Assembly: GCA_002269645.1 (NCBI GenBank)
Contig: NIVC01004947.1
Coordinates: 1 to 30,409 of the forward strand
From: Macrostomum lignano
Taxonomy: Eukaryota
Reading direction: 5' to 3'
DNA: 30,409 nucleotides
The position numbers and the translations under genes were made by a program. Under the pieces are notes generated by a model. It made no database searches. It worked only from the letters and a program-made list of their open reading frames with translations, and had not been told where the DNA came from. This document shows positions 3,428 through 30,049 of the stretch, piece by piece. The stretch's first letter is position 1. Every line of letters begins with the position of its first letter.

Positions 3428-4216
3428 CTGTGTCTCTGATCTCTGCTTTGTGTCTCTGATGTCTGAATTGTGTCTCTGATGTCTGAATTGTGTCTCTGAT
3501 CTCTGCCTTGTGTCTCAGGCTGTGTCTCTGATCTCTGCCTTGTGTCTCAGGCTGTGTCTCTGATCTCTGTTTTGTGTCTCAGGCTGTGTCTCTGATCTCT
3601 GCCTTGTGTCTCAGGCTGTGTCTCTGATCTCTGCCTTGTGTCTCAGGCTGTGTCTCTGATCTCTGCCTTGTGTCTCAGGCTGTGTCTCTGATCTCTGTTT
3701 TGTGTCTCAGGCTGTGTCTCTGATCTCTGCCTTGTGTCTCAGGCTGTGTCTCTGATCTCTGCCTTGTGTCTCAGGCTGTGTCTCTGATCTCTGCCTTGTG
3801 TCTCAGGCTGTGTCTCTGATCTCTGCCTTGTGTCTCAGGCTGTGTCTCTGATCTCTGTTTTGTGTCTCAGGCTGTGTCTCTGATCTCTGCCTTGTGTCTC
3901 AGGCTGTGTCTCTGATCTCTGCCTTGTGTCTCAGGCTGTGTCTCTGATCTCTGCCTTGTGTCTCAGGCTGTGTCTCTGATCTCTGCCTTGTGTCTCAGCC
4001 TGTGTCTCTGATCTCTGCCTTGTGTCTCAGGCTGTGTCTCTGATCTCTGCCTTGTGTCTCAGGCTGTGTCTCTGATCTCTGCCTTGTGTCTCAGGCTGTG
4101 TCTCTGATCTCTGCCTTGTGTCTCAGGCTGTGTCTCTGATCTCTGCCTTGTGTCTCAGCCTGTGTCTCTGATCTCTGCCTTGTGTCTCAGGCTGTGTCTC
4201 TGATCTCTGCCTTGTG
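3428..4216 (+). repeat. 32-bp minisatellite (TGTGTCTCTGATCTCTGCCTTGTGTCTCAGGC), about 23 regular copies plus degenerate leading units
   Basis: Direct reading shows the period. The unit consists of 20-bp and 12-bp sub-repeats that both begin TGTGTCTC. Confidence 0.97.
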
Positions 4217-4561
4217 TCTCTCTCTCCACGCCTCTCTTTCGCCCTCTCTTCATCTACCTCACCAACTCCCCCCTGTAAGCGCCTGCTGCCTAGTGCGTGG
4301 TGGCGCGCATGGCAATGATTTTACTCCTGGTATTGCTTATGCAATGTACATCCAGTGTGCTTTCTTGCCGAATAATTTGTCCCTGGGTGGCTGGAGTCCT
4401 GCGAAATTTTTGCCTTTTCCAACTTCAAGTAGTCTAAAGACCCCCATCCATCGCAATGCATTGTACAAAAAGGCCTGAAAATCAGTATAATATATAAGGA
4501 GAAGTGAGCCTCAAAATAAAATTTCATAATTTCGTAGTAGGACGTGCACTGAGTGCCTCAC

Positions 4562-4710
4562 TCTTAAGCCCCTTTCCTCTGATCAGGCGGCAGATCGGCC
4601 GCAGCAGAGGGCCAGCTGTCTCAACTGTCTCTGCGCTGCGTAGCCGCGAGGACGAGGGGAGGTCGCCGCTCCTTGAGGCCTGCAGCTGGATGCCAGGGGA
4701 AGAGATGAAG
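4562..4710 (-). other. Candidate isolated internal exon (149 nt)
   Basis: Minus strand reads CTCCCTAACCACTCTTTCAG| (branch-like CTAAC, pyrimidine tract, AG) and ends AAGA|GTGAGG. One frame is open throughout (FISSPGIQLQASRSGDLPSSSRLRSAETVETAGPLLRPICRLIRGKGLK). Confidence 0.25.
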
Positions 4711-4888
4711 CTGAAAGAGTGGTTAGGGAGAGAACTGTTGAATTTGTTGAAATTCAGCCATAAAAAATATAAAATTTGACTTTACGAGCCGAACAGTCTT
4801 CCTTACACTCTATCTCATATTTGCTTAGCACTCCCCCTACTGGGGGACGAAACTATCATGTCACCCCGTTCGATCACACTTCACAATG

Positions 4889-5275
4889 TTCCATCACCCT
4901 CTCCGATGTTCCATACCCTCTCCGATGTTCCATACCCTCTCCGATGTTCCAGCACCCTCTCCGATGTTCCATCACCCTCTCCGATGTTTCATCACCCTCT
5001 CCGATGTTCCATCACCCTCTCCGATGTTTCATCACCCTCTCCGATGTTCCAGCACCCTCTCCGATGTTGCATCACCCTCTCCGATGTTCCAGCACCCTCT
5101 CCGATGTTCCAGCACCCTCTCCGATGTTTCATCACCCCTCTCCGATGTCCCAGCACCCTCTCCGATGTTCCATCACCCTCTCCGATGTCCCAGCACCCTC
5201 TCCGATGTCCCAGCACCCTCTCCGATGTTTCATCACCCTCTCCGATGTTTCATCACCCTCTCCGATGTTCCATCA
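4889..5275. repeat. 20-bp minisatellite (A(T/G)CACCCTCTCCGATGTT(C/T)C), about 19 copies
   Basis: Period is visible directly. A few units carry 1-nt indels. The ORFs 4776-5348, 4858-5310 and 4886-5317 are repeat artefacts. Confidence 0.96.
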
Positions 5276-5866
5276 CTCTCATCCTCATTCTTTCTCATTC
5301 CTCTTCATAAACTTTGAGAACCTTTTTGGCCAAGCGAAATTTTTGTAATAAACAAGGCAAAATGTTTTATTCGAGCCTGGAAATTCTCCCGCCCTTCCTG
5401 CATCCGGTTCTATCCAAGGAACCCTAACCGAAGCTCGGGATGGACCGCCTACTTTACAAATTGATATTTTAGAACTAAACTGGTATTTCTGATCACCGCA
5501 GCGAATTTATGTAAATACAAATACATCGCCACACTCTGGAATACGTTGGTATCAGTACTCTTGGGACTCGAGCAGTGCAAAATCCCAACGGATCCTATCC
5601 TGAACACCAGCGCAAATACCAGTCAAACTTGTTATTGCTTCTGACTTTGCTGTCTACTAAGCCTAAGGTGGGTGGAGATTAAAAAGAATAATTCTCTACA
5701 GTGAAATTGCGTGCGAGATCGACTTCTACTCTATAGCAGACTCCAACTCCTCAATGGCAATTTCCGATCTCATTTCAAACAGCCTCTCTCCGTGAGCAGA
5801 ACTCCTTTGCAGCCGCGTCTCCCTACCCGAGAGGCTTTAATCCGAGGCTCCTTTCCTGCCTGCAGC

Positions 5867-7469
<1,603 letters not shown>

Positions 7470-8030
7470 AGTCAGTAAGCAGACTGGCCCGGCAATCTAC
7501 ACTCCTCTATGCCGCGAAATCATTCGGCATGCTTTGTGAAGCCGCTTCTCTGGCCGCGTTATAAAATAGAGGATGGGAGAAAAAGGAAATTGGGGAGAGT
7601 CTGGGAGAGAGACAGGAAGGGATCCGATGAGGAACAGGCTGGCATTGCTCGCGAAGGAGCGGACTCGTGGGAGCAGAGGAGATTGGGCCGCCTGGCTGGC
7701 TGGCTGTTCGCCCCTCTGCCAATCCACAGCTTTTTCATTAAAACCGATCGCCCATTCAAACTGGGTGTACGCGTTCGGTGCTTCTGTCCCTCTGCACCTG
7801 GGTATAGGCCTTCTCAATCTGGGACACGACAGTTCTCAGACTGCTCATCACTAATGCACTCTCTTCCTGTACTATATTATACACCTATTCCTGACAAACA
7901 GACAGATGGAGAATGACTTGGAATGGCTGTTTTCATGATCGATTATTGAATAGCAATCGGTGCTTGAATGGAACAACTAAGGCGTATGTCGAGACTTATA
8001 AAGTTGGGCTTATTTTCCACAAATTTTCAG

Positions 8031-8195
8031 TGCAAGGCGACAGTTCTCATTACAAAGCAGAGGCAGAAAGACAAGTCAAGTACCTGGTACTTGTGGATCT
8101 CGTGGAAGAAAACCCATTTGTGAAAACTGAAGTCACTGTAACAAGCTCCGCGAACGACTGCCGAACAAGTCTGTCGTCATCGCCCAGATGCAAAC
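8031..8195 (+). other. Candidate internal exon (165 nt, phase 1 to 1)
   Basis: AATTTTCAG| acceptor and C|GTAAG donor. A single open frame reads QGDSSHYKAEAERQVKYLVLVDLVEENPFVKTEVTVTSSANDCRTSLSSSPRCK. The parent gene is unresolved. Confidence 0.3.
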
Positions 8196-8760
8196 GTAAG
8201 AACATAATTGCAATATAGTTTGCAAAAATCAACACAACTTTAAAGTGAGAAGTCAGTTCTGTGGCTACACCTTTTATTCCCATGACTTGAAAATACAGCA
8301 AAGTTTTGCTGAGGTTGGAAGTCCTAAGGCTGTGCTATATTAGTGTTATACTAGAAATTTGCATACCATACAAGCTCTAGCTATGCTCAACTCTGAACTA
8401 CACTTACTGAATTGCACAGCAGAGAGCCATCGTTTAAATCATTAATCATTCCTTGTTTTTGCATTCGATGCCGCATTATGACAACAGCGTTGAATCGGTT
8501 TTCATCTGACGGAGGGAACTATGACGGATTGCGACGGTGGGCAAGGCTTCTAAGTGATTTGCCAATATATATCAGCCTCTGTCAGCGAGGCTTTGGATTG
8601 GGAAGATTCCGATGATTTGTTGCTTAATTCTGGAGAATAAGGGCGAGTTCTGACGAGTCGACGACGTAAAAAGCAAGCTAATGGGTGTTTTTTAAGGCAA
8701 CTATTAGCCATTTTGTTTAGTGGGGATCTATGCCTATAGAACGCAGCGCAGTGCTGGGGT

Positions 8761-10296
8761 ACCAAGGGGCTTTAGCACCAAGGGGCTTTAGCACCAAGGG
8801 GCTTTAGCACCAAGGGGCTTTAGCACCAAGGGGCTTTAGCACCAAGGGGCTTTAGCACCAAGGGGCGCCAGCACCAAGGGGCGCCAGCACCAAGGGGCTT
8901 TAGCACCAAGGGGCGCCAGCACCAAGGGGCTTTAGCACCAAGGGGCTTTAGCACCAAGGGGCTTTAGCACCAAGGGGCGCCAGCACCAAGGGGCGCCAGC
9001 ACCAAGGGGCGCCAGCACCAAGGGGCTTTAGCACCAAGGGGCTTTAGCACCAAGGGGCTTTAGCACCAAGGGGCTTTAGCACCAAGGGGCTTTAGCACCA
9101 AGGGGCTTTAGCACCAAGGGGCTTTAGCACCAAGGGGCTTTAGCACCAAGGGGCGCCAGCACCAAGGGGCGCCAGCACCAAGGGGCTTTAGCACCAAGGG
9201 GCTTTAGCACCAAGGGGCTTTAGCACCAAGGGGCTTTAGCACCAAGGGGCTTTAGCACCAAGGGGCTTTAGCACCAAGGGGCTTTAGCACCAAGGGGCTT
9301 TAGCACCAAGGGGCTTTAGCACCAAGGGGCTTTAGCACCAAGGGGCTTTAGCACCAAGGGGCTTTAGCACCAAGGGGCTTTAGCACCAAGGGGCTTTAGC
9401 ACCAAGGGGCGCCAGCACCAAGGGGCGCCAGCACCAAGGGGCTTTAGCACCAAGGGGCTTTAGCACCAAGGGGCTTTAGCACCAAGGGGCTTTAGCACCA
9501 AGGGGCTTTAGCACCAAGGGGCTTTAGCACCAAGGGGCTTTAGCACCAAGGGGCTTTAGCACCAAGGGGCTTTAGCACCAAGGGGCTTTAGCACCAAGGG
9601 GCTTTAGCACCAAGGGGCGCCAGCACCAAGGGGCTTTAGCACCAAGGGGCTTTAGCACCAAGGGGCTTTAGCACCAAGGGGCTTTAGCACCAAGGGGCTT
9701 TAGCACCAAGGGGCTTTAGCACCAAGGGGCTTTAGCACCAAGGGGCTTTAGCACCAAGGGGCTTTAGCACCAAGGGGCTTTAGCACCAAGGGGCTTTAGC
9801 ACCAAGGGGCTTTAGCACCAAGGGGCTTTAGCACCAAGGGGCTTTAGCACCAAGGGGCTTTAGCACCAAGGGGCTTTAGCACCAAGGGGCTTTAGCACCA
9901 AGGGGCGCCAGCACCAAGGGGCGCCAGCACCAAGGGGCGCCAGCACCAAGGGGCTTTAGCACCAAGGGGCTTTAGCACCAAGGGGCTTTAGCACCAAGGG
10001 GCTTTAGCACCAAGGGGCTTTAGCACCAAGGGGCTTTAGCACCAAGGGGCTTTAGCACCAAGGGGCTTTAGCACCAAGGGGCTTTAGCACCAAGGGGCTT
10101 TAGCACCAAGGGGCTTTAGCACCAAGGGGCGCCAGCACCAAGGGGCTTTAGCACCAAGGGGCTTTAGCACCAAGGGGCTTTAGCACCAAGGGGCTTTAGC
10201 ACCAAGGGGCTTTAGCACCAAGGGGCTTTAGCACCAAGGGGCGCCAGCACCAAGGGGCGCCAGCACCAAGGGGCGCCAGAACCAAGGGGCTTTAGC
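8761..10296. repeat. 16-bp minisatellite, 96 units of two variants (ACCAAGGGGCTTTAGC and ACCAAGGGGCGCCAGC)
   Basis: Strict 16-bp phase across 1536 bp. By hand, 18 units are the GCC variant and the rest are the TTT variant. Confidence 0.98.
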
Positions 10297-10299
10297 CAG

Positions 10300-10950
10300 C
10301 ACCGAGGTAAGAAACCTTCGTCTGCTTGACGTGGATGTCCTTATCCAGAAGCAGTTCGCATTTAGAAAGCGGAACCTCCGGCCGCACGGCGACCTCAGCC
10401 TGCGAGACCTGGAAGCAGCGGAAGGCCAGCTGACTCTCTCGAACAGAATCCCTTTGCCCTCCACTAAAATCCAAAAACATTATTCCCCTACGTCATGAAT
10501 AAGAGGCAATTGGAACCCCTGTGAAATCCACTTCTTCAATGACGGATCCCAAATCAACTCCGACTCTGGCTACGGCTACTGCTTCGTACCTGGAGGGAGA
10601 CCGTGGCGACCTTCTCTCAGCACACTGGTACCTGCTTTACCGTCCTTCAGAAGGGAGAGATCTATATGAAGGAGATCACCCTCCTCTTGGACAGTCAAGC
10701 AGCGATCCACGTGTACAGTCCTCGACTGCATCGCGCAGCTTAACCGCTTCTAAAGGCGCCTCCAACAAGGTGTCCCTGATTGGATCTCCGGGCACTCTGG
10801 CCACCCCGGCAATGTGTCGACGATCGCCTGACCAAGGCTGGCTCAACCTTGCCTTTTACTGGTCCCCGTGGCCCGAGAGTTTCTGCCAGCTCGTCCGCAA
10901 CTTAAGAGCTGCCGGGCGAGCAACCATCCACCTCCTGGACTCTCCAGAAT
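10300..10950 (+). mobile_element. Decayed non-LTR retrotransposon fragment (tether + RNase H)
   Basis: Frameshifted translation gives IHFFNDGSQ (about 10528), EITLLLDSQAAI (about 10672) and WISGHSGHPGN (about 10780). These match the RNase H motifs TDGS, DSQAAI and [11 protein letters not shown] of the better-preserved element at 28405-29592. Confidence 0.8.
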
Positions 10951-11446
10951 AGGTATTTTACTGTTGGTTTGTCTAATAATAATATGGTTATTTTCTCTGA
11001 CACGAAAATACGTTAAACTAATTGATAAGAATATTTTTGCGTGGAATTCCCTACAGCGTGCAGTTGTTTAGCTGCAGTTTTCTAAAAATAGAAATTACAC
11101 ACCCGCGGCCTCACCTCGCTTCGCGAAATTGTTCACTTTAAATGTACTGTACTGTGCACTATGCTAAATGCAATGCAATGCGTTAGTGTTTATTTTAAGC
11201 CATGACCAGTACAATTACGTCCTTGTTAGTTTGTCAGAACTGCGGATTACCTAATTACTATTATTGTTGATGACTTCTTAGCGCAGAAAACAAGGCACTT
11301 TACCCTCTTGCAGTATAAAAATGGTACTATAGGTAGATTGTAAGTCTATAAACATCAAAACCTGTAAAAAACGTTGCCTGCAATATACGAGCGTACAATC
11401 TATAGGTTTAGTCTTATACTAATCATGAATTGCCTGCCGATTGCAG

Positions 11447-12042
11447 AGTTGGTGATGCATTACACACTAATCTGTGTGAGCACAGTCTGCTTGTGCATAG
11501 AAATCCAGCTCAATGAGATATTCGATGGACTCAACTCTGAGTACAGCAGATACCTCGGCTACATCTGCCCCGTTGTGGGGACGCTACTGAGCTTACTCAG
11601 GCTAACTGTCATCATCTTCAAGAATTGTTGCAAAAGAAAGAACAAGAAAAAATCTGGAAGCGCAGAGAGAAGCTGCGGCTGCAGCTGGTGCTCGTTGATG
11701 CAGCTTCTGGCTTGGCTCGCCTGCGCCGCTGGCTTCTTGGCCATGACCGTGCTCATCACCATCGGCCTGCCGCACATTCAAGGCGTCGTCTCGTCGGCGT
11801 CATCAGCGACGATGTCAGACTGTCCAGGAATCAACTTGGCCATTCGACTGTGGCGATTTCAAGCGGCAGTGGCCGGAGTGGCGGCTGGCGAGTGTCTGGC
11901 TCTCTTCGGCCTGAGAATTGCAGGGCTGGTGACGGCCCCGAGACTGCAAGGAAGGAGGATGGCGTCATTTTCCAAGAAACATGGTCGTTTAGACCGGGAG
12001 CGGCAAAAAAGCAAATCCCTGTGTAAAATTTGTTTGTTACAG
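11447..12042 (+). CDS. Exon encoding a small, Cys-rich, four-transmembrane-like protein (orphan)
   Basis: A 230-codon ORF in non-repetitive sequence, with acceptor TTGCAG| at 11446, a possible ATG at 11455 and donor CAG|GTAATG at 12043. It has four hydrophobic segments (LVMHYTLICVSTVCLCI, YLGYICPVVGTLLSLLRLTVIIF, LMQLLAWLACAAGFLAMTVLITIGL, FQAAVAGVAAGECLALFGLRIAGLV), with a basic KRKNKKK loop after the second. Confidence 0.65.
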
Positions 12043-12814
12043 GTAATGTTTGCAGTGATGTTATAAGTAGTTCTTACCGAATCTTGTAAAATACAGACGT
12101 TTAATCCATACTTATTTGTTTGACTAAGTGCCTGTGACTTTTGCTGGCCAAAAGTTACAAACGAGGATTTTAATGGCTCAGTAAAATTTTTATAGCTTTA
12201 GTAAATTAGTTCTATTCTTATGTCATTTAACTTTTCTACAGACTTATACATTATAACTAATGATATGCTATATTTTAATCGTTACGAGTTACAAAGATAA
12301 TAATACAAATTGTACATAAATTTAGAAACTATAGTTATAATTATCATGTTGAATTATTAGGGTACTAAACTATTAGCGCCAGACTATAAAATGTAAATTA
12401 TTATGTAATAAAACAACTGGCATACAGTATAATTGATAACACTTGTAGTTGAGAAATAATACTAATTTTCAATACACTAAAAATGGGAAGTCAGGATTTT
12501 AGAATTGTTGGTGCTCAAAACTGACGGGTCATAATAGGAATCTGCTGTCTGACTTTAGACATCTCTCTTAGTTCGTAAAGTGTACACGAGTACTTTATAA
12601 TCGCTTCGATAGCCAGTCAATTGACGTTCTAAAGTTTATCTGAAAAAAACAGTAAAAATTTTGTCTATGGCACAGAGAAGGCGATCTTTTCTGCGTTGAT
12701 GTCAAATTTGAAGTCAAAAGAAGAGAGATCCCGGCCCAACTTCTTTGTTAAAGCTGCTTTAAAAGAAATTAAAGGTTGCTCTAGACGACTTTGATTATAA
12801 TAAAGACAGGAAAG

Positions 12815-14859
12815 ATGGACCAGAAAGAGGACTCAGAAGCGACAGTCGATCTGAAGCAAACATTCTGCTTCGACTTTCTATCCGGGCCAGAAACTACGGA
12901 GGCGGCCAGTCACAGCAATCAGAGCAACCGCACCGACATCATGAAGAAGTACTTAGTCTACATGGAGCTACCCAAGATTAGAGTGAGTGTCTGATATCTC
13001 AACTAATCTACTGGTAGTAGTTTAGATTTAACAAAAACTTTTGGTATTAAAAAGATTTTCATCACTGTTCTTACCAAGCCATTTTTATCTACACTGTACA
13101 GATTGGAGACTACAGAAAGTCGAGCTGCGTCTCCGGCAACGTGATCCGCTTTCACTTTCTGCTTCGTATCGCTCGCGATGAAGAGAATATGGTGCTGCGA
13201 CTGCAACCCATCAAGGCCTACAAAACGCCCGTGGTGAACTTCGCCGTCATCCATCGGCCTTTCCTTGACGATGACAGCGCTAAAGGTCCAATTCCAAAGA
13301 GTCCCGGTGTGCGCAGCCCGCTGATCAACTACGAAGGCGAAGAGACCAGTCCAGGAGTGCCCGACAGTCGTACCGATGATATCATTGAAGACTTTCAAAG
13401 CGACAAAGCTCAAGCGCCTAGTGTCGAAGATGAACAAAAGCAACAACAGGGACAGAGGATATCAAGCGATGCTAGCATCGGTAAATCTCAACCTAAACTG
13501 AAAGAAAGCCCGAAGAGGCGGTCCAGTCAGGCGAGTATCGACAAAGACAAAGTACAGCAGAAATCCTCAGAGAGCCCGAAGAGGCGGTCCAGTCAGGCGA
13601 GTATCGACAAAGACAAAGTACAGCAGAAATCCTCCGAGAGCCCGAAGAGGCGGTCCAGTCAGGCGAGTATCGACAAAGACAAAGTACAGCAGAAATCCTC
13701 CGAGAGCCCGAAGAGGCGGTCCAGTCAGGCGAGTATCGACAAAGACAAAGTACAGCAGAAATCCTCCGAGAGCCCGAAGAGGCGGTCTAGTCAGGCCAGT
13801 ATCGACAATGCCAAAGTACAGCAGAAATCCTCCGAGAGCCCGAAGAGGCGGTCCAGTCAGGCGAGTATCGACAAAGCTCAACAAGAGCAGGCAAAGAGTC
13901 CCCAGAAACATTCGAGTTCAGAAAAGACCCAGACCCAGCCCTCAGAGAGTCCCAAGCGACGATCTAGTCAGGCAAGCACCGACGAGCAGCAGCGGTTAGA
14001 AGTAGAAGCGCCCGTGAGGCGGCCAAGCCAGACAAGTCTCGACCAGTCTAAAATGGCGATCGTTGATCAGAGACGCTCGAGCCAATCAAGCACAGGTGCT
14101 CAGCAGCAGCGATTTGAAGTTGAGGCGCCCGTTAGGCGGCCAAGCCAAGCTAGCGAAGATCTGCTTCAGCAGGCCGGGGCAGCAAGGCAGCAAGAGAGTC
14201 AAACCAGTTCGGAAAATCGTCAGTCTCAGGTACCGGAGACGTCTCAACAGAGACCTGCCCAGGGCATCTTGGCTGAGTCTCCAAAAAAGGCCCGACTTGA
14301 GATCGAGTCACCGACACCTCGTCAGGACATTTCCCCAGCTAGACTTCTCTCAGACGATAATGCAACCACTCGCACAGATACGACCGGTCGTCAAAAGCAG
14401 CGCCGTCCAAAGAAGTATTTTGTCTACTGCGAGATACCGAAGATCCTCCTTGGCGACTATCGCAACTCCAGCGTCATCTGCTCTGAGATTATCCACGCGC
14501 ATTTCCTGATGAAAATTGCCAAAGATGAAGAAAGCAACCAGCCGCGTCTGAAACCGATCAAGCGGTATCACCGGCCAAAAGTGAACTTTGCAGTCATTCA
14601 CCGGTCGCTACTGGTTGACGACGACGCAATCGGGCCGATTCCTCGCAGCCCGAACGTTCGGTCACCGATGATCCGCGAGGACGAGCCCGAGGAGGAAGAC
14701 GACGTTCCGCCAGACAACGTGATGCACGCCACAATGGGCTTCTGCTACGGTCGCCTGCCCCGCTCTAAGTACGAGCTGATCACGCAGTGGTCGTTGGTCA
14801 ATGGAGACGGTGGTGGACCGCCACTTCCTGAGCTCGTGCTCAGCAAGGCCGATGTGTGA
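12815..14859 (+). CDS. Two-exon orphan gene, 641 aa: duplicated 88-aa domain flanking an S/Q/R-rich tandem repeat
   Basis: Exon 1 is 12815-12982 (donor AGA|GTGAGT), the intron is 12983-13101 (TGTACAG|) and exon 2 is 13102-14859. The internal duplicate independently supports the splice: PKIR|IGDYRKSS aligns without gaps to PKILLGDYRNSS. Confidence 0.88.
13504..13880 (+). repeat. 66-bp coding tandem repeat (ESPKRRSSQASIDKDKVQQKSS), 5 full copies plus 1 partial
   Basis: Units start at 13504, 13570, 13636, 13702, 13768 and 13834 and are nearly identical at nucleotide level. Confidence 0.95.
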
Positions 14860-15451
14860 TTTTGTCAAGTGCCATTCGGCGTGCTTAGCGGTGAAATCAA
14901 TAACCACGGCGTTCATTTTTGTTCAGCGTCAGTCATCGAGCGACCGATTTTTCAGTTTTACTTCTTTGGAACTCTTCAAACATTTTTTTCGTCTTTACAG
15001 ACAAGTTTTTTTCGGCCTGCGCACTGCAGGTGCAATCAATCGCTCAGAAATTTCCTCTGCAATTTATACTAATCCTCTTTTACTACCTGTGCCCATACAT
15101 TGTTTAGACAGAAGCGACCACTAAATTAAACCGGATTTTTTATTTCAACTATACACACTTGCTGAAACAAAATAAGTCGTTGATGCATCATTTTCACCTA
15201 AATAGGCCTTGCACTTTCTATTCCGTCAAATTTTAACCAGCCTTGATTACTTAGATTATTTAAATTACTTATTAGCCGATAAGTAGCTCGGATAATTAGG
15301 TCCGTAAACTACTATTTTTTAGATCAATCCGATATTCTATTCGATAAATTCTTTATTCGATAAGATTGAATAGCTACAAAGAAAACTTTAAATTACAGCG
15401 TGTCAATGTCCACATGGACTTGATTATACATCATTCTAGGAAATCGTAATA

Positions 15452-16706
15452 TTGGGTTGTAGCAAAAGTTTCGAGCGTTTTCTTTAAACTTCTAGCGCTT
15501 TCTCTAGAGAAATTTCTGGAATGTTCTATGGGGGTATACGAGTATAAGAGTGACCAGTGCGCACTACCGTATCCACTTCATATGCTCAACCTTCAGCTAC
15601 AATGGTTACGAAACAACACGATCAACGTCACCTCATTCGAGCATCTTTACTTTTCTGCTTCAAGCTGGGCAACTCAGCAGCTGAGGTGCATCGCAAGTTA
15701 TGTCAGGCATGTGCCGAAGACTTTCTGAGCGATCAACGCTGCCATGTCTGGTTTGCGCAGTTCAAGAAGGGTACGACGAATTACTCGAAGGCAAGTAGCT
15801 CTCCGGTTACCCACCTGAGCTCGATATCCAGCAGCTTGCCCTGCTTTTCGAAGCTGAGCCATATCTTACAACACGTGAAATTGCAGAGTACTTTAAAGTC
15901 TCTGCCATGACCACCGACCGCGGCCTTCATCAACTCGGCAAAGTGCACAAGCTTGGTCGATGGGTTCCACACGAACTTTCCCGTGAGAACAAGGATCAGC
16001 GCATCATCACATGCACCCAACTCCTGTCCTATCGTCGCAATCCAGGATTGCTCGATACTGGTTACTGGCGATGAGGAGTGGGTGGCCAGTTTCAACACCA
16101 CGCGCAAGCGCCAGTGGCTTTGCATGGCGGATCAGCCACAGCCAACGCCCAAACCTGATCTACACCAAAAGAAGGTCATGATGTGAGTCTGGTGGAATTC
16201 CAGTGGAATCGTCCACTGGGAGCTCCTGCCTCGTAACACCAGCATCACTGCCGATGTCTACTGTGAGCAGCTGGACAGACTGCATCAGGCTTTTGTCAAG
16301 CAGCAGGGCGCTGGCGCTAAAATTCGATTTCTTCACGACAACGCCCGACCTCGTGTGGCGAAGAAGACACTACAGAAGCGGCTCGAGCTAGGCTGGGAAG
16401 TGATGCCCCACCCTCCCTACTCGCCTGATCTTGCGCCATCTGACTACCATCTGTTCTGCTCTATGCAGAGCCACATAAATGGTGTGACGTTAAAAGACGA
16501 GGAGGAGGTGACAGCCTGGCTCGAGCAACACTTCAAGTCGCTGCCGCCTGAGTTCTTTAAGAAGGGCATCCACGATCTCATCGCCAGATGGCAACAGGTC
16601 ATTGATCAGGATGGTGATTATATCCTGGAATAGAAACTGTTAGGACTGGAAAAATGAATTCAAAGTTTGAGTGCAGAAACGCTCAGAACTTTTGTTACAA
16701 CAACAA
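15452..16706 (+). mobile_element. Mariner (Tc1/mariner, DD34D) DNA transposon, full length and inactive
   Basis: About 30-bp imperfect TIRs (left TTGGGTTGTAGCAAAAGTTTCGAGCGTTT; right reverse complement TTGTTGTTGTAACAAAAGTTCTGAGCGTTT), with TA flanking both ends (15450-15451 and 16707-16708). Length is about 1.25 kb. Confidence 0.93.
15602..16633 (+). pseudogene. Mariner transposase pseudogene
   Basis: N-terminal HTH-like region (LLFCFKLGNSAAEVHRKLC...WFAQFKKG), WVPHEL, TGDEEW, HDNA and YSPDLAPSDY, with exactly 34 residues between the second and third catalytic Asp. Frameshifts occur near 15780 and 16055, and a premature TGA lies at 16184-16186. Confidence 0.93.
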
Positions 16707-18583
16707 TAACTTAAGTGAGCATTAAATGTAGTGAATTTTTTTAATGAGCCCAGTCTTCAGTTTAACACTATATATATGCGATATCAATCTGACGAACTTA
16801 AGGGAACTTCAACAGCCAATAGAATGGAACGGGGGTACCAGGATTCCAAAAGTAAAAAACGAGAAAAACAAACAGTAACTCGGTCAGATTGGCACTCCAT
16901 CATTATTTTCTTTCCGATCCATGAATACACACAGTTAACAAAATTTTTTGACTTTAGCAACACAGGAGCAGCAAGTAGCTTTCACTATTAGTTGACAGTA
17001 GATAGCAAACAGTTAAATTAGTAATAGTCAGAGTTAGTTTTTACAGTTACACTTTGTTAGTGCAACACATAGCAGCGAAGTTAGCAGCTCAAACCGGAAA
17101 GTGTGTGACGTCACATTTTTTCAAAAAGCGAACCACGACTGGCAACTATTCTGCATTTAAAACAAAATTTAATATTTCAATATATACTTACCTTGCCTAA
17201 TTGATAGTGGCAAATTCCAAAAATGTCTAAAACTGCTAACTACTTTCTAAATAGATACTTTAGAAATAGTTTTAAACAGAATAAGTAGATAACTCGTGGA
17301 AACTATTTGCATCCAATTCTCACCAAAACTATTTTTGGCGATTTTAATTTTTCATCACATTAAACACCCACTGAGCGTCAAGTCAATGTTTCAGAAAAAT
17401 CGGAATTATTTTGTCGACCTAAACTTAAAGAAGCTTGATACTCCGTCTATGAACCCGTCACGGACTACTTAAGTACTACTTATCTACTAGTGGTCCTTGG
17501 AACCCGTCTGTGTGCCGAATTCTGCAATGCTAAGGCTACTCAAGGATTTGTGCAAAACTGCATGGTTGCCGCGTGAGCTGACGGTGGAGCACAGGACGAG
17601 CTGATTGAGCGCTATTTATCAAGTGGTTCAAAATCGTTCATAACTTTGGAAAAATGCAGCCAAGCCTAAAATTTTATGGAACCACGACACTTCAAAGTCT
17701 ACATATTTAAAGTTTCATTCAAATCAGACGCTCTGGACGTGAGCAATAGTACAGAAAGTTTTGCAGCTTTATCTTGGACACACAATATCTTGGAGACGTC
17801 CAACTGATACGTGTCTAGGAAGTTGCTGGCGCATCACAAAACACTTGTCTGCAGCGTCACGGATATCGATACGTATTTTTGTCTTAAGGGTCTGAACTAC
17901 GGTGAAAATGCACATACAGGATTGGGAGTCTGAAAAAGCTGTGCACGGATGCATCATCTTTGGCTTTTATGTTTGGCGTCCTTTTACTTCTAATTTATTA
18001 CATGTACGTGTCAACAGTTCTCAACAGTATACGAATTCAAACTCCGACTCCAAATACTCCGAATGGAAAGAAGATTGTCAGTCGTGCACTCGAACTTCTC
18101 TGAGCAATATAAATATTGCCGTGTATTTGATCATAGACTGATGCGTTAGGCAAAATTTTCTGGTCAAAGTAAATATTTCAGTCTTCGGATTGACTTCAGT
18201 TCTCAAGCAGTTTGATCTTCGCAGTGCTCAGCTCCTGAAGACAACACACATCGGTTCGAAACACGAATTGGCGAATTTTGCTGATTTCTCTCAGAGTCTG
18301 GAATTCAAAATAAAAAAATGTTTTGCGCTGATTGTCAAAGTAGTGCCAGAAGAAATCAGGACATATCTGATCAAAATTTTCAGAAAAGTAAATGTCCAAA
18401 ATCTTGTTTGAAACAAACAACCAGGAATAGCAAATGGCGTAATGGCACTTTATACACATACGAGTACTTTTTGAATCTGCGAATCCGGGATCCTCATCCT
18501 TGATCAAAATTCGAACTATAGGACCCAGATTCTAATTTAGAATTTAAATCCGGAATCCTCATCCAGGACTGAATTCAGAAGTG

Positions 18584-18929: not shown

Positions 18930-19536
<607 letters not shown>

Positions 19537-19542
19537 GATATT

Positions 19543-19543
<1 letters not shown>

Positions 19544-19581
<38 letters not shown>
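19544..19581. repeat. (TA)n microsatellite
   Basis: A TA dinucleotide run immediately after the TATC array. Confidence 0.9.
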
Positions 19582-19583
<2 letters not shown>

Positions 19584-20839
19584 ATTTATCTATTAATAAA
19601 CTATTCATACTGTACAGACTCACCTTCTAATTAGGAGTTTTCAGTTTTACGAATATATCAGCTGGTTTTGGTGAAAGTCACTGCGAACAGCTACAGCTTG
19701 ATCCTCTGTTCAGTGCCTTATATAGCAACAAGCTACCAGTATTCGAGCTTGAGCTCCCATTGGCTGCTCGGAAGGGCCCTGGCCCGTGTCTAATTCGAGA
19801 TTCAGTCTCGAATGGATCACGCAGCGAGTTTTAGCCCCAAAATTTGAATAAATATTTCAGAGCAAGCAGCTCGCGAGTTTGACCCAGTGACACCCCAAAT
19901 ATGGCCCTTGAAATTCTTGAGGCCTCATCACTTGAAACCCCTCGAATTCCCACGGGATTGAGGAGCAGAACAAAAAGTTTATCCAGAGTGAAACTTTGAC
20001 TCCGTCACTGTGGAGCTGACGTATTTCACCGATACGTGGAATCTTGAATGCGTTTTGTTCGTTTGCATAATTAATTTTGTGGGCATGTCAAGCGTGCTCA
20101 GCCTGGGCTGAGTTGGCTCAAATGTGGCTCTGGATGGCTAATCGAGTTTCTGGAGCGAGACTCGGACTGTGTGGCAACCAAAGCCAGCGAAGCTGGAATG
20201 GCGATGCGGCACAAATGTGTCGCGAATTGCGAAGGCCCTGCTGGTTGGCTTTGATTGACCTATAGGGATACGACCAAGGAGCGGTAGAAGTTGCAGTTGT
20301 ATCGCGACTTAAGTAACACCCATGATCAATGGAAAATTGTTTAAAGGCTCAACTAAAACTTTCATTGGTCCTTTGGCGTGACCGTGGATAGACCTACAAC
20401 ACCTTCGAAGGAGGACAACGTCCCACAATCAGCGTGGAGGCAATTCATTAAGGAAACCACGCCACATGTTGACTTCATGTTACTGATAATCAATCACCGC
20501 AATAAACTGTTTTCAAATTTGTTTGACACACAAAAATAAGATGGTTCCAAAATCATGTTTCCTCCCTGAGAGAAACAGAGCGCTTATTACAAAAGTGGAT
20601 GACTAGTACAAGTTTTCTCTCGCTCAAGCTGTCTCTTCGCACGCAATTCGTCAGTTTACAACTTAATTTATGCGAGCTATAACCACCTTATTTTGAGACA
20701 GCACTTCTCTGCAAGTCGCTTTTAAACCTAAATGATACTGCAGACTAATTTCGACTATTTTAATTGGCTTAGCCAAAAAATTGTTTAAAAGACTTTTGTC
20801 AATCAGGGACGTGGTAAGGGGTAGGGCTACCAAAACTAT

Positions 20840-21037
20840 GGCGCCCCTTGGTGCTGGCGCCTCTTGTTACTGGCGCCTCTTGGTGCTGGCGCCTCTTGGT
20901 GCTGGCGCCTCTTGGTGCTGGCGCCTCTTGTTACTGGCGCCTCTTGGTGCTGGCGCCTCTTGGTGCTGGCGCCTCTTGGTGCTGGCGCCTCTTGGTGCTG
21001 GCGCCTCTTGGTGCTGGCGCCTCTTGGTGCTGGCGCC
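20840..21037 (-). repeat. 16-bp minisatellite (GGCGCCTCTTGGTGCT), 12 units; inverted relative of the 8761-10296 array
   Basis: The reverse complement AGCACCAAGAGGCGCC differs by one base from the GCC variant of the first array, and the first unit (GGCGCCCCTTGGTGCT) is an exact match. Confidence 0.96.
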
Positions 21038-23083: not shown

Positions 23084-24671
23084 ATGCCGGAGCCCGCAGC
23101 TGCTGCAAACGACGCCGCTAGCAAGCGGTCGACCTCCCCAATGCCGCCAGTTAGAAACTCCAGCGGAGGCGCGTCGGGGCGCGGCGGTGGTGGCGGTGGC
23201 GGCGGCATCACCGAAGAAGTCGACGTGGTATTTCTGGAGAGTTTGGACAAGAAGTACGAGTGCCCCGTGTGCGGCCAGGTGCTGCGCTATCCTGTACAGT
23301 TCGAGGAGTGCGGACACCGCTGCTGCAGCTCCTGCCTGCCCGACCTACTGAGGTTGGTCTTTGTCAGTTTGGTTAATATTTGGTTTGGTTGGAAGTTAAT
23401 ATGCTGGATGGGAATAATTATTTGATGAACAGACTGTCTTACTGTCTTAGCCCATTTGCTTTTCACCGAAGGGTGGAGAATAATCAATAAAGTATTATTA
23501 ATAAAATCTTTTCAATTGGCAGGAAAAGGCAGAGGTTGTTATTAATACACATTAATACTTTCTTTAAGCTGCCTTTTCAACAATTGCACGCACTGTAGAA
23601 GAAGTAGAGTGACCTGTAGGGCTTGTGTAGGTCTACAGTTAAATTGAATTAGTCCACAACTTGAAGCTTTACCACTAATATAAGCTGCCTCTGACCTCTG
23701 TCACAGGGTCTTTAAAGTTCTGCGAGTCTTGAACGGACTTAACCCCTTAACTCTTCAAAAAACTGACAGGGTGGCGCCTCGATGCCCGATCGACCAGCAA
23801 ACAATCGACAAGGACAAGGTGTACGCTGACAAAGCCTTCCAGAAGGAGACGGACAGCCTGGGCGTTAAATGCTCGTTTTTTGAGCGCGGCTGCAACTGGA
23901 CCGGCGTGCTCTCTGAGCTGATGGTGAGCTATTAGATGAGCAAATTATCTGTTAGCTTTTCTGTCCAAGACAACGGATTGTCATGCTGATCCAGGGTCTG
24001 TGGTGTTTGAGCGGACAAACGCGACGATTCGTGGAGTTTACGACTCCAAATTGGGACTTTAAAATGAGCTTACATGTAGTAAGGGATAGCCTGATAATAT
24101 TCAGACGAATAGGGACTTAAAAAGGCCCCATATAATTTGGGTTAAACGGTGACGAACAAAAAATTTGACAGGCACCAAAATTAGGGACTTAAAACCTGCC
24201 TTTAAATGTCAAAATGGGACCTAAAGAAATATCCAAATGTAACCTACTCGTATGTAGGGTTGAGAGAGTTTAAAAGACAAAGGTTTCCGAAAAAGAGAGT
24301 GAGGAAATAAACTCACCAAGTACTATTTCCGTCCATTTACAATCCACAGTCGCATATCGAAGGCTGCGACCGCATGCTGACCACATGCCCCATGCGCTGC
24401 GGTGTGGAGTTTCAAAAACGTTTCCTGGAAAAGCACCGATTGGAGGACTGCCCTAAACGGGACATTCAATGCCAGTTCTGCGAGATTGGCCTCGTGGCCG
24501 AACAGGAGGCCGGGCATCTCGAGACCTGCCCGAAGTTTTTGGTGCCCTGCCCGAACAAGTGCAAGAAGAAGGAAGTGGCCAGGGAGATGATGCAGGAGCA
24601 CCTGGAGAATGAGTGCATGCGGCAGGACCTCTGCTGCCCGTTTTCCACGTACGGCTGCGACTTCAGCGTAA

Positions 24672-24729
<58 letters not shown>

Positions 24730-26345
24730 TTCGGTGTCTCAGTGCCTGACTTAGTGCATGTCTGTTTGTCAGTTCGTCAGCCACAGCCACTCCCGCGCTC
24801 CTTCCAGGGCCGCAAGAAGCAGCTGAAGGAGCACATAGCCGAGAAGCAGCTCAACCATATGGAAATTCTGTGCTCGGCCGTGAAACAGGGCGACAAAAAC
24901 CAGGAGAAGCAGCAGAAGCAGATCTTAGAGATGGAGAAGAAGCTGGTGGGTGTGGAGCGCCGTGTTGGCGGCCTGGAGAATCTGTTCGGACCGCAGCTGG
25001 TGTGGCGCATCGACAATTACCAGGAGAAGCTGGCCGAGGCCAAGGCGGGAAAGAAAGCCACCATTTTTAGTCCGCCGTTTTTAACAAACCGGCATGGCTA
25101 CAAACTGGCCTTGTCCGCCTGCCTATACGGCGATGGGAAATGTGAGTGCATGCTTGGTTTGCATGTTGTCTTTTAGTTATGTAAGTTCGCAGGATGGGAG
25201 CCTTTGGCAGCTGTCTTTAGTATCGCGGGCGGGAATCGCTCGACCAGCCAAAGGAAAGTTTGCCTGCGAACCACGAATTGGTGTGGCTTTGCTAGAAATC
25301 GAACTACACTGTACGGCGTGTTGCCGCTCCGCTACTCAACCCTCGTGTTAGTAATTTTGTTATTTGCAGTGGGGAGCTAATTTGAACAGTGCCGCAAGTT
25401 AAGGCGACAGTCTACATGCAGCCAGCGATCGGAGACAAGCTGTCCTTGTCCTTTCTGCTGAGCACACCCACGGATACGTACGCAGTACGCAACGTCCCAC
25501 GTACGATGATACGTACAGGGACTTATTCGTAATCAGACAGGTGTACGTCCCTGTACTTAATTGGTTAGCCCAAATTGCCGTGATTCGCACAGCAGAAAAG
25601 CCCCATGTCAATTTTCGTGACCGACGACTAAGTCGTATAGTAATATATCGTCTATCTATTATAAATCGGACCCAAGTACCCAGGGACTTGGGCGGGAACA
25701 CGTATACCGATCGGTACTCAATGTTCTATTACACACACTTTATAGTTAACAGCAGAATGGAGCTTGAAAAATCATGAGCTCATGAAGATGAATGTATATG
25801 ACGTGTCACCACACCGCATAGGTAAAGATGTTTGATTAAACGCACCCATTAGACATGCACAGCTCAAAGTGAAAACCTGTACTGGTGCAATTATAATAAT
25901 CGCACTTACTTTTCTTTATGCTTAAGTTTTGCCCACCCTAGTAGAAGTATGAATAGCACAGCCGTTTTTTAGCCTAATGCTACAAATCGTATGCGATGCA
26001 ATTTTAACTTCCGCAGTCCGAGGCCAGTATATGTCCCTGTTCGCCTGCATCTGCAAGGGCGAAAACGACGCCCTCCTTGCCTGGCCGTTCGCTTACAAGC
26101 TGACCTTCCAGCTCATCGACCAGTGCGAGGATGTGTCGGCCAGGAAGAACATTGTCTACACCGTGACACCGAACCCGTGCAAAGAGAATCGACCATTTCT
26201 GGGTCGACCGCTTGGCGAGAGGAATGCGAGCTTCGGAGCGGCGAGGTTCGCCGAGCTGGACGCCATCGGGAAGCTGGACTACATCAAGGACGACACCATG
26301 TACGTGAAGGTGACGGTTGATCTGGAGAATCTACTGCCGCTGTGA
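23084..26345 (+). CDS. TRAF4-like: TNF receptor-associated factor (TRAF4/TRAF6-like): RING, five TRAF zinc fingers, short coiled coil and MATH domain; 467 aa in 5 exons
   Basis: Exons are 23084-23352, 23770-23923, 24350-24667, 24808-25141 and 26017-26345. All introns are GT-AG and phase-compatible, and the total is 1404 nt. Motifs: RING CPVC...CGHRCCSSC...CPID; zinc fingers CSFFERGC...HIEGC, CPMRC...HRLEDC, CQFC...HLETC, CPNKC...HLENEC and CPFSTYGC...H; MATH LVWRIDNY...FSPPF...GYKLALSACLYGDG...MSLF...LLAWPF...IKDDTMYVKVTVD. Paralog assignment is uncertain. Confidence 0.93.
24673..24728. repeat. (TCTG)n microsatellite in TRAF intron 3
   Basis: 14 units starting at the last base of the GTAAGT donor. 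Confidence 0.95.

Positions 26346-28057: not shown

Positions 28058-30049
<1,992 letters not shown>

Follow-up and report, generated by a model that had tools for sequence, protein, structure and literature searches.

What kind of protein is encoded between positions 12815 and 14859 of the Macrostomum lignano contig NIVC01004947.1, and what might such a protein do? The stretch of DNA analysed here, which we call the window, comprises 30,409 nucleotides (nt) of GenBank assembly GCA_002269645.1 (positions 1 to 30,409 of the contig, forward strand). A preliminary description, made from its letters, had proposed an orphan "dumbbell" at this locus: two copies of an 88-amino-acid (aa) domain joined by a long linker rich in phosphorylation-type motifs. 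We find that the locus holds a genuine, transcribed, protein-coding M. lignano gene, BOX15_Mlig032993, whose sequence is not new, for GenBank and UniProt already list its product among their hypothetical proteins. The gene and its one group of paralogues encode a fixed succession of parts, namely a leader, domain N, an acidic patch, a variable linker, domain C, a second acidic patch, and a tail of about 40 aa. Our tentative answer to the second question is that the Mlig032993 protein is a bivalent adaptor or tether with an evolvable spacer.

The gene, its duplicated domain and its paralogue

The gene has two exons on the + strand, 12815-12982 joined to 13102-14859, which together give an open frame of 641 aa. 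The intron between them (12983-13101) is 119 nt long, lies in phase 0, and runs GTGAGT...ACAG. Read without splicing, the frame closes after 59 codons, in an open reading frame (ORF) that extends from 12791 to 12994 and ends ...KIRVSV before the stop at 12994. Because the C copy of the same domain runs uninterrupted, the splice can be seen to restore the start of domain N. The gene and its parts are as follows.

12815-12982, + strand: exon 1, from the start codon through an acidic leader of 43 aa to the opening 13 aa of domain copy N (KKYLVYMELPKIR)
12983-13101, + strand: intron, 119 nt, phase 0; its junction matches the model PAA67425.1, based on RNA sequencing (RNA-seq), and the intron of the paralogue
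13102-14859, + strand: exon 2, from the remainder of domain N through linker, domain C and tail to the stop codon TGA (14857-14859)
12944-12982 and 13102-13326, + strand: domain copy N, aa 44-131, split by the intron and ending GPIPKSPGVRSPLI
13327-14409, + strand: linker, aa 132-492, of low complexity, with ten RRxSQxS motifs
13507-13876, + strand: young tandem array of a 66-bp (22-aa) unit, SPKRRSSQASIDKDKVQQKSSE; 5.6 copies with 97% matches by Tandem Repeats Finder
13940-14147, + strand: older, diverged copies of the 66-bp unit, 13940-13983 at 80% and 14000-14043 at 61%
14410-14673, + strand: domain copy C, aa 493-580, without an intron and ending GPIPRSPNVRSPMI
14674-14856, + strand: C-terminal tail, aa 581-641, an acidic patch followed by MGFxYGxxPxSKYxLxxQWSLV...PELVLSK
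12667-12699, + strand: upstream ORF of 10 codons in the 5' untranslated region (UTR), MAQRRRSFLR and a stop, in a different frame from the main ORF in the window

The GenBank annotation of this assembly, Mlig_3_7, was built from a genome-guided RNA-seq transcriptome, and one of its entries, PAA67425.1 ("hypothetical protein BOX15_Mlig032993g1, partial"), reads ...ELPKIR and continues with IGDYRK... exactly at the predicted junction between 12982 and 13102. The paralogue, Mlig032245, also has an intron of 119 nt, at the homologous codon boundary and in the same phase (ELPKVK before it, IGDYHK after it), with an intron sequence unrelated to the one found here; in both genes the intron is confined to the N copy. 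The junction put forward in the preliminary description is therefore the one that the RNA-seq-based model uses and that the paralogue keeps in position and phase. The PAA67425.1 model carries translated 5' UTR at its start. At the locus that encodes it, on contig NIVC01001484.1, the ATG corresponding to 12667 opens a stop-free frame that continues into the main ORF; a longer N-terminus from this ATG was considered and rejected, being out of frame in the window, where two 1-nt indels separate the copies. The main start, MDQ, matches the position of the paralogue start, MAQQK..., and given these two single-base indels and that start, the stretch upstream of MDQ is best read as 5' UTR. The protein would appear to be intracellular, to judge from a sequence with no signal peptide, hydrophobic leader or membrane segment.

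The two domain copies share 54 of 88 residues in a gap-free alignment, the very count that had been made by hand. When copy C was used as a tblastn query against the window, copy N was matched at E = 4.5e-28, with a 12-aa piece in exon 1 matched separately, and as judged from the alignment the resemblance is far beyond chance. Both copies are basic, with a net charge of +8 for N and +6 for C. Across the four copies available, N and C of the gene and of its paralogue, 40 columns are invariant, and 9 more are copy-specific, conserved in one state among the N copies and in another among the C copies. Identity over the 88-aa core is 60/88 between the two N copies and 62/88 between the two C copies, compared with 45-54/88 for N-C pairs; since like copies resemble each other across paralogues more than N resembles C, the internal duplication is older than the split of the paralogues, and each domain copy has kept its own identity since then. 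Each copy in both genes carries the signature K.Y.VY.E.PK...GDY..SS ... HFL..I ... PIK.Y..P.VN.AVIHR ... GPIP.SP...SP, and the family is marked as well by the tail, MGF.YG..P.SKY.L..QWSLV, and by the phase-0 intron after ...LPK(I/V)(R/K). The tail occurs once per protein and is conserved in the paralogue.

Mlig032245 (369 aa; BOX15_Mlig032245g1-g3; PAA55697.1, PAA78611.1 and PAA64615.1; UniProt A0A1I8H7A5 and A0A267ESS9) is a true paralogue group, with the same order of leader, domain N, acidic patch ending ..EEDF, linker, domain C, acidic patch and tail. It differs in the linker, which is about 85 aa long, rich in E, R, K and Q (E 19%, R 16%), and holds one RRxS motif, no SPKR motif and no tandem array; a cluster of the form KRRRR-x10-KKRKK stands directly before domain C. 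The array of RRxS and SPKR motifs, absent from the paralogue, is thus a feature of Mlig032993 and not of the family.

How far does this family extend? When a two-copy profile of the domain was run with hmmsearch against 1.84 billion representative proteins at E<=0.001, exactly two were matched, both from M. lignano: PAA67425.1 (Mlig032993g1) and PAA55697.1/PAA78611.1 (Mlig032245g2/g3). Each representative stands for a cluster at 50% identity, so that orthologues from sister species at 50-90% identity could be hidden behind these two; relatives too distant for such clusters would have surfaced as separate matches, and among the 1.84 billion none did. A scan of Joint Genome Institute metagenome contigs with family patterns matched 172 stretches, none of which was confirmed. 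A word-indexed homologue search, queried first by the last 159 aa of the protein and then by the alignment of all four copies, returned only a 268-aa fragment of the gene on contig NIVC01001896.1; that search is uninformative, having missed both PAA67425.1, which contains the 159-aa query exactly, and Mlig032245, whose own domain segments were part of the alignment query, although both are in its collection. The profile search thus supports orphan status for what had been proposed as an undescribed protein family. As far as sequence comparison reaches, this is a small family, so far seen only in M. lignano, with Mlig032245 as its single paralogue group.

The domain is likewise without a match among known families and structures. 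In hmmscan searches of Pfam-A at E<=10 no family was found for the whole proteins, their N and C parts, the isolated copies, the four-copy consensus or the tail, and precomputed Pfam records hold no match for the paralogue. Against all chains of the PDB, phmmer returned nothing credible (ceruloplasmin at E ~0.6, the only hit, is noise) and hmmsearch with the four-copy profile gave 0 matches at E<=10, solved NEMF/RqcH-type chains included. These results bear out the preliminary description, which had not recognised the domain, and support the view that the 88-aa unit is unclassified within reach of sequence and profile searches. UniRef does attach automatic names, "DUF1769-domain-containing" to the paralogue and "NFACT-R_1 domain-containing" to a nearly identical sequence. 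Neither DUF1769 (PF08588) nor NFACT-R_1 (PF05670) is supported as an assignment, for the names are mutually inconsistent and could not be reproduced with Pfam at E<=10; they look like borderline automatic matches. Structure prediction with AlphaFold2 gave models of low confidence: for domain C with the tail (alignment of 2 rows) the mean predicted local distance difference test score (pLDDT) was 34.4, and for the full-length paralogue (3 rows) it was 33.6, with a predicted template modelling score (pTM) of 0.19. All domain residues lie below pLDDT 50 in both models, which at this low confidence suggest four strands for each domain copy, with two or three more for the tail, and on that basis the modules are probably beta-rich. 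Only one part of either model rises above pLDDT 60, a predicted helix of 40 residues (151-190) in the linker of the paralogue, at 62-76.

The linker and the duplicated loci

The linker of Mlig032993 is 361 aa long and dominated by serine and glutamine (S 19%, Q 15%, K 9%, R 9%), with a hydrophobic fraction of 0.11 and a net charge of +16. RRxS motifs occur ten times in it and SPKR motifs seven times, and the tandem array accounts for six of either kind; on this the preliminary description, which spoke of a linker of about 360 aa with the same numbers of motifs and six of each in a 22-aa repeat, was right throughout. All ten RRxS motifs share a longer form, RRxSQxS, as in ESPKRRSSQASID, EAPVRRPSQTSLD, DQRRSSQSSTG and EAPVRRPSQASED. 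The DNA of the linker can be resolved into three layers: the six units of the young array; units seven and eight, at 13940 and 14000; and a separate pair of repeats, 13985-14030 and 14102-14147, 89% identical at a spacing of 117 nt. Since the layered repeats are of different ages, the array must have arisen from a single unit that was duplicated repeatedly, in several rounds. To judge by these layers, the linker is evidently the evolvable part of the protein, grown to 361 aa in Mlig032993 by tandem duplication of the RRxSQxS unit.

RRxS motifs are enriched over expectation, with 10 observed against 0.58 expected, or 5 against 0.36 once the young array is collapsed to a single unit. Their clustering in a disordered segment is what one looks for in a multisite substrate array of basophilic kinases, with the proviso that the motifs derive from one unit. 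SP dipeptides in the linker are not enriched over composition after the same collapse. We also considered an S/TQ cluster domain, the substrate region of ATM and ATR, and rejected it, since the 16 S/TQ sites observed compare with 12.5 expected and 13% of shuffled sequences reach 16. To judge by their motifs, the RRxS and SPKR sites may be phosphorylated.

Two further contigs of the same assembly carry this locus. NIVC01001896.1 is 99.84% identical to positions 4053-17653 of the window, which extends beyond the end of that contig, and has the same number of units in the young array. Inside the gene its sole difference is the loss of 1 bp from a run of CCC, at window position 13951 (about 9900 on that contig), and because this deletion breaks the frame, a fragment of 268 aa is called there. 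The deletion may be an error of long-read sequencing in a homopolymer, or it may mark a real null allele. NIVC01001484.1, the home of PAA67425.1, shares synteny with some 14 kb of the window, with a DNA identity of 90-99.7%. Large-scale redundancy is known for the M. lignano genome, and a duplicated locus fits it. The genomic ORF of this second copy is intact and encodes 596 aa, with four 22-aa units compared with six in the window. The deposited coding sequence (CDS) of PAA67425.1 holds three units, while its own locus (NIVC01001484.1, 6160-8068) encodes four; the skipped 66-nt unit most likely comes from the mapping of a repeat-collapsed transcript. Repeat number, by which linker length had been suggested to be tuned, does vary, the count being six here, four in the duplicated locus and three in the transcript-based CDS.

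The copy on NIVC01001484.1 also allows the action of selection to be gauged. Seven substitutions and a single indel of 1 aa distinguish the two proteins; these are confined to the leader and the linker, with none in the domains and tail. Counted by the method of Nei and Gojobori, the domains and tail show 0 nonsynonymous and 3 synonymous differences, the latter all lying in the tail, so that domain C has no differences whatever. For leader and linker the counts are 7.5 nonsynonymous and 17.5 synonymous, a ratio of about 0.11, and for the linker the ratio is about 0.13. By these counts the linker is less constrained than the domains, yet not neutral. Over the longer distance to Mlig032245, the proportion of nonsynonymous differences in the domains (pN) is 0.18-0.21, with synonymous sites saturated (pS 0.71-0.82). 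A low pN beside a saturated pS indicates that the domains have been held under strong purifying selection in the long term.

Tether, globule and other readings

We tentatively favor the view, at somewhat less than an even chance, that the Mlig032993 protein serves as a bivalent adaptor or tether. Its two like modules would each bind a partner of one kind, and the spacer would hold the modules apart. The number of units would set the length, charge and docking capacity of the spacer, and it would change by unequal exchange; phosphorylation of the ten RRxS sites by basophilic kinases could plausibly tune the spacer as well. The spacer would be a charged helix in the paralogue and, in Mlig032993, a disordered array with up to ten sites of basophilic-kinase type. 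The preliminary description had likewise imagined a cross-linker or spacer responsive to phosphorylation. There is a functional analogy, with no homology, to bivalent tethers built on ER/K single alpha-helices or on disordered tandem-repeat spacers, in which two like modules flank a spacer of variable length. A bolder version of the tether, which we consider improbable, would make the 88-aa unit a new fold or ligand-binding module of macrostomid origin, set in a tether tuned by repeats and multisite phosphorylation and perhaps acting in some lineage-specific process, for example in the germline or in reproduction, fields in which Macrostomum genes evolve fast.

Several observations count against the tether. 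The AlphaFold2 models, at a pLDDT near 34 on both occasions, lend no support to independent binding modules. The ten RRxS sites descend from one unit and so are not independent evidence of selection on phosphorylation, and the array, missing from the paralogue, is not essential to the core function of the family. The 1-bp deletion at 13951, if real, would truncate that allele. Finally, neither the Mlig032993 nor the Mlig032245 identifiers turned up in a full-text search or in the supplements of M. lignano papers sought for expression. For the role in cytoskeleton, cilia or sperm that the preliminary description offered as examples, nothing points that way in these sources or in the sequence.

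The chief rival does away with the dumbbell: the two halves and the tail would pack into one pseudo-symmetric, beta-rich globule, and the linker would be a disordered insertion loop free to vary in length. This we regard as unlikely on balance. Several points speak for it. Linker length differs more than 4-fold between the paralogues (85 compared with 361 aa) and by two units between the loci while the domain sequences are frozen; nine columns differ between N and C, as one would expect of distinct, complementary halves; the single tail makes the protein asymmetric; and domains split around unstructured regions do exist, fission-yeast Duc1 being one. The AlphaFold2 model of the paralogue shows no confident packing between the domains (pTM 0.19), a result that says little, given an alignment of 3 rows. 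The long, stiff E/R/K helix predicted in the paralogue would tend to keep the domains apart, and a ratio of about 0.13 in the linker is not that of a neutral loop.

Readings that place the protein in a known functional class are weaker than either the tether or the globule. In one of these the protein would belong to chromatin or to the sperm nucleus: the SPKR and RRxS motifs of the linker might bind DNA and be released by phosphorylation, and the basic cluster that precedes domain C would act as a nuclear localization signal (NLS). Seven SPKR motifs, repeated beside phosphorylatable serines, do recall the SPKK motifs of sperm histones, and the KRRRR-x10-KKRKK cluster of the paralogue fits the classical bipartite NLS pattern, which is well established. 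Published abstracts describe many lineage-restricted Macrostomum genes as related to reproduction. Sperm nuclear basic proteins are far more basic, however, than a linker with 18% K+R and a charge of +16 over 361 aa in an S- and Q-dominated context; Mlig032993 lacks a histone fold, and the domains that flank its linker are folded and of non-histone type; SP is not enriched once the array is collapsed; and the paralogue has no SPKR at all. We think this reading quite improbable. Slightly more so is the idea that this is an animal protein remotely related to the fungal DUF1769/Duc1 cortical proteins, as the UniRef name of the paralogue would suggest. According to the Duc1 paper, the one experimental study of DUF1769, the domain of fission-yeast Duc1 is bifurcated by an unstructured portion and has basic patches, and DUF1769 occurs in fungi only, in cortical proteins with a proposed binding to phosphatidylinositol 4,5-bisphosphate, PI(4,5)P2, at the plasma membrane. 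The domain copies here, at +6 to +8, and the two-part layout around an unstructured stretch make for a likeness of architecture only, and a superficial one. Duc1 also has an FFAT-like VAP-binding motif, for which Mlig032993 has no evident counterpart, no dedicated search having been made. Against kinship stand the negative Pfam results for proteins, copies, consensus and tail together with the empty precomputed record, the competing NFACT-R_1 name of a near-identical sequence, and the lack of any fungal protein among the matches in the 1.84 billion representatives, for a family reported from fungi alone.

It might be objected that we are dealing with a decaying or non-functional ORF, derived from a transposon or created by assembly. 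The frame-breaking deletion on NIVC01001896.1 could be cited for this, as could a window rich in satellites and transposon fragments and the want of relatives outside the species. The ORF is intact both here and on NIVC01001484.1, however, the gene model is based on RNA-seq, the position of the intron is conserved, and the deletion sits in a homopolymer of a long-read assembly. Above all, the domains show strong purifying selection over a saturated synonymous distance to the old paralogue, and because of this selection analysis a non-functional ORF is essentially excluded.

Surroundings of the gene and significance

The gene lies in repeat-rich DNA. A 16-bp minisatellite, ACCAAGGGGCTTTAGC, with 96 copies at 96% matches, occupies 8761-10296, some 2.5 kb upstream of the gene, and NIVC01001484.1 aligns to it in part only, at 76-77%. 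Between the two lies a 230-aa ORF on the same strand as the gene (11374-12066), with a sub-threshold similarity to the Tweety chloride channel family (E = 5.6e-4; 19 bits, where the cut-off is 31.8); the corresponding position on NIVC01001484.1 has a gene call of 196 aa, and this ORF may be the neighbour of the gene on its upstream side. Just downstream of the gene, at 15557-15910, an ORF with the HTH_48 domain of Mos1/mariner transposases (E = 7e-15) is probably a transposon remnant. Tetranucleotide microsatellites stand at 1-990, (CTAA)x247; at 6087-6751, (ACAG)x166; and at 18930-19593, (CTAT)x166; such long microsatellites yield spurious long ORFs, for example CLSVCLSV... and YLSIYLSI.... 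Other tandem arrays are found at 3489-4220 (32 bp, 23 copies), 4886-5280 (20 bp, 20 copies) and 20839-21037 (16 bp, 12 copies). Farther along, a multi-exon TRAF-like gene extends over 23084-26345 on the + strand, with a RING domain at 23084-23425, TRAF-type zinc fingers at 24374-24754 and a MATH domain at about 25000-26345; near 24700 both strands encode repeat peptides of the CLSV/TDRQ type, which suggests an ACAG-type microsatellite. An ORF of 395 aa at 28405-29592, with an RNase H match (E = 2e-13) and a weak RVT_3 match, is probably the 3' part of a retrotransposon pol gene.

The general importance of Mlig032993 is modest at present, for it is one of many uncharacterised, species-restricted genes of M. 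lignano and has no link to a known pathway; specialists, to whom such genes are a common sight in this genome, will not be surprised by it. If the 88-aa domain proves to be a new fold, it would add one more entry to the taxonomically restricted protein domains. What the family does offer is a natural experiment, in which old paralogues with an identical domain architecture have come to carry wholly different spacers: one has a charged helix, the other an array of phosphorylation-type motifs enlarged by repeats. A second natural comparison is provided by two recent copies with identical domains and tail that differ in repeat number. Since M. lignano permits both RNA interference and transgenesis, the function of these proteins is directly testable in the organism itself.

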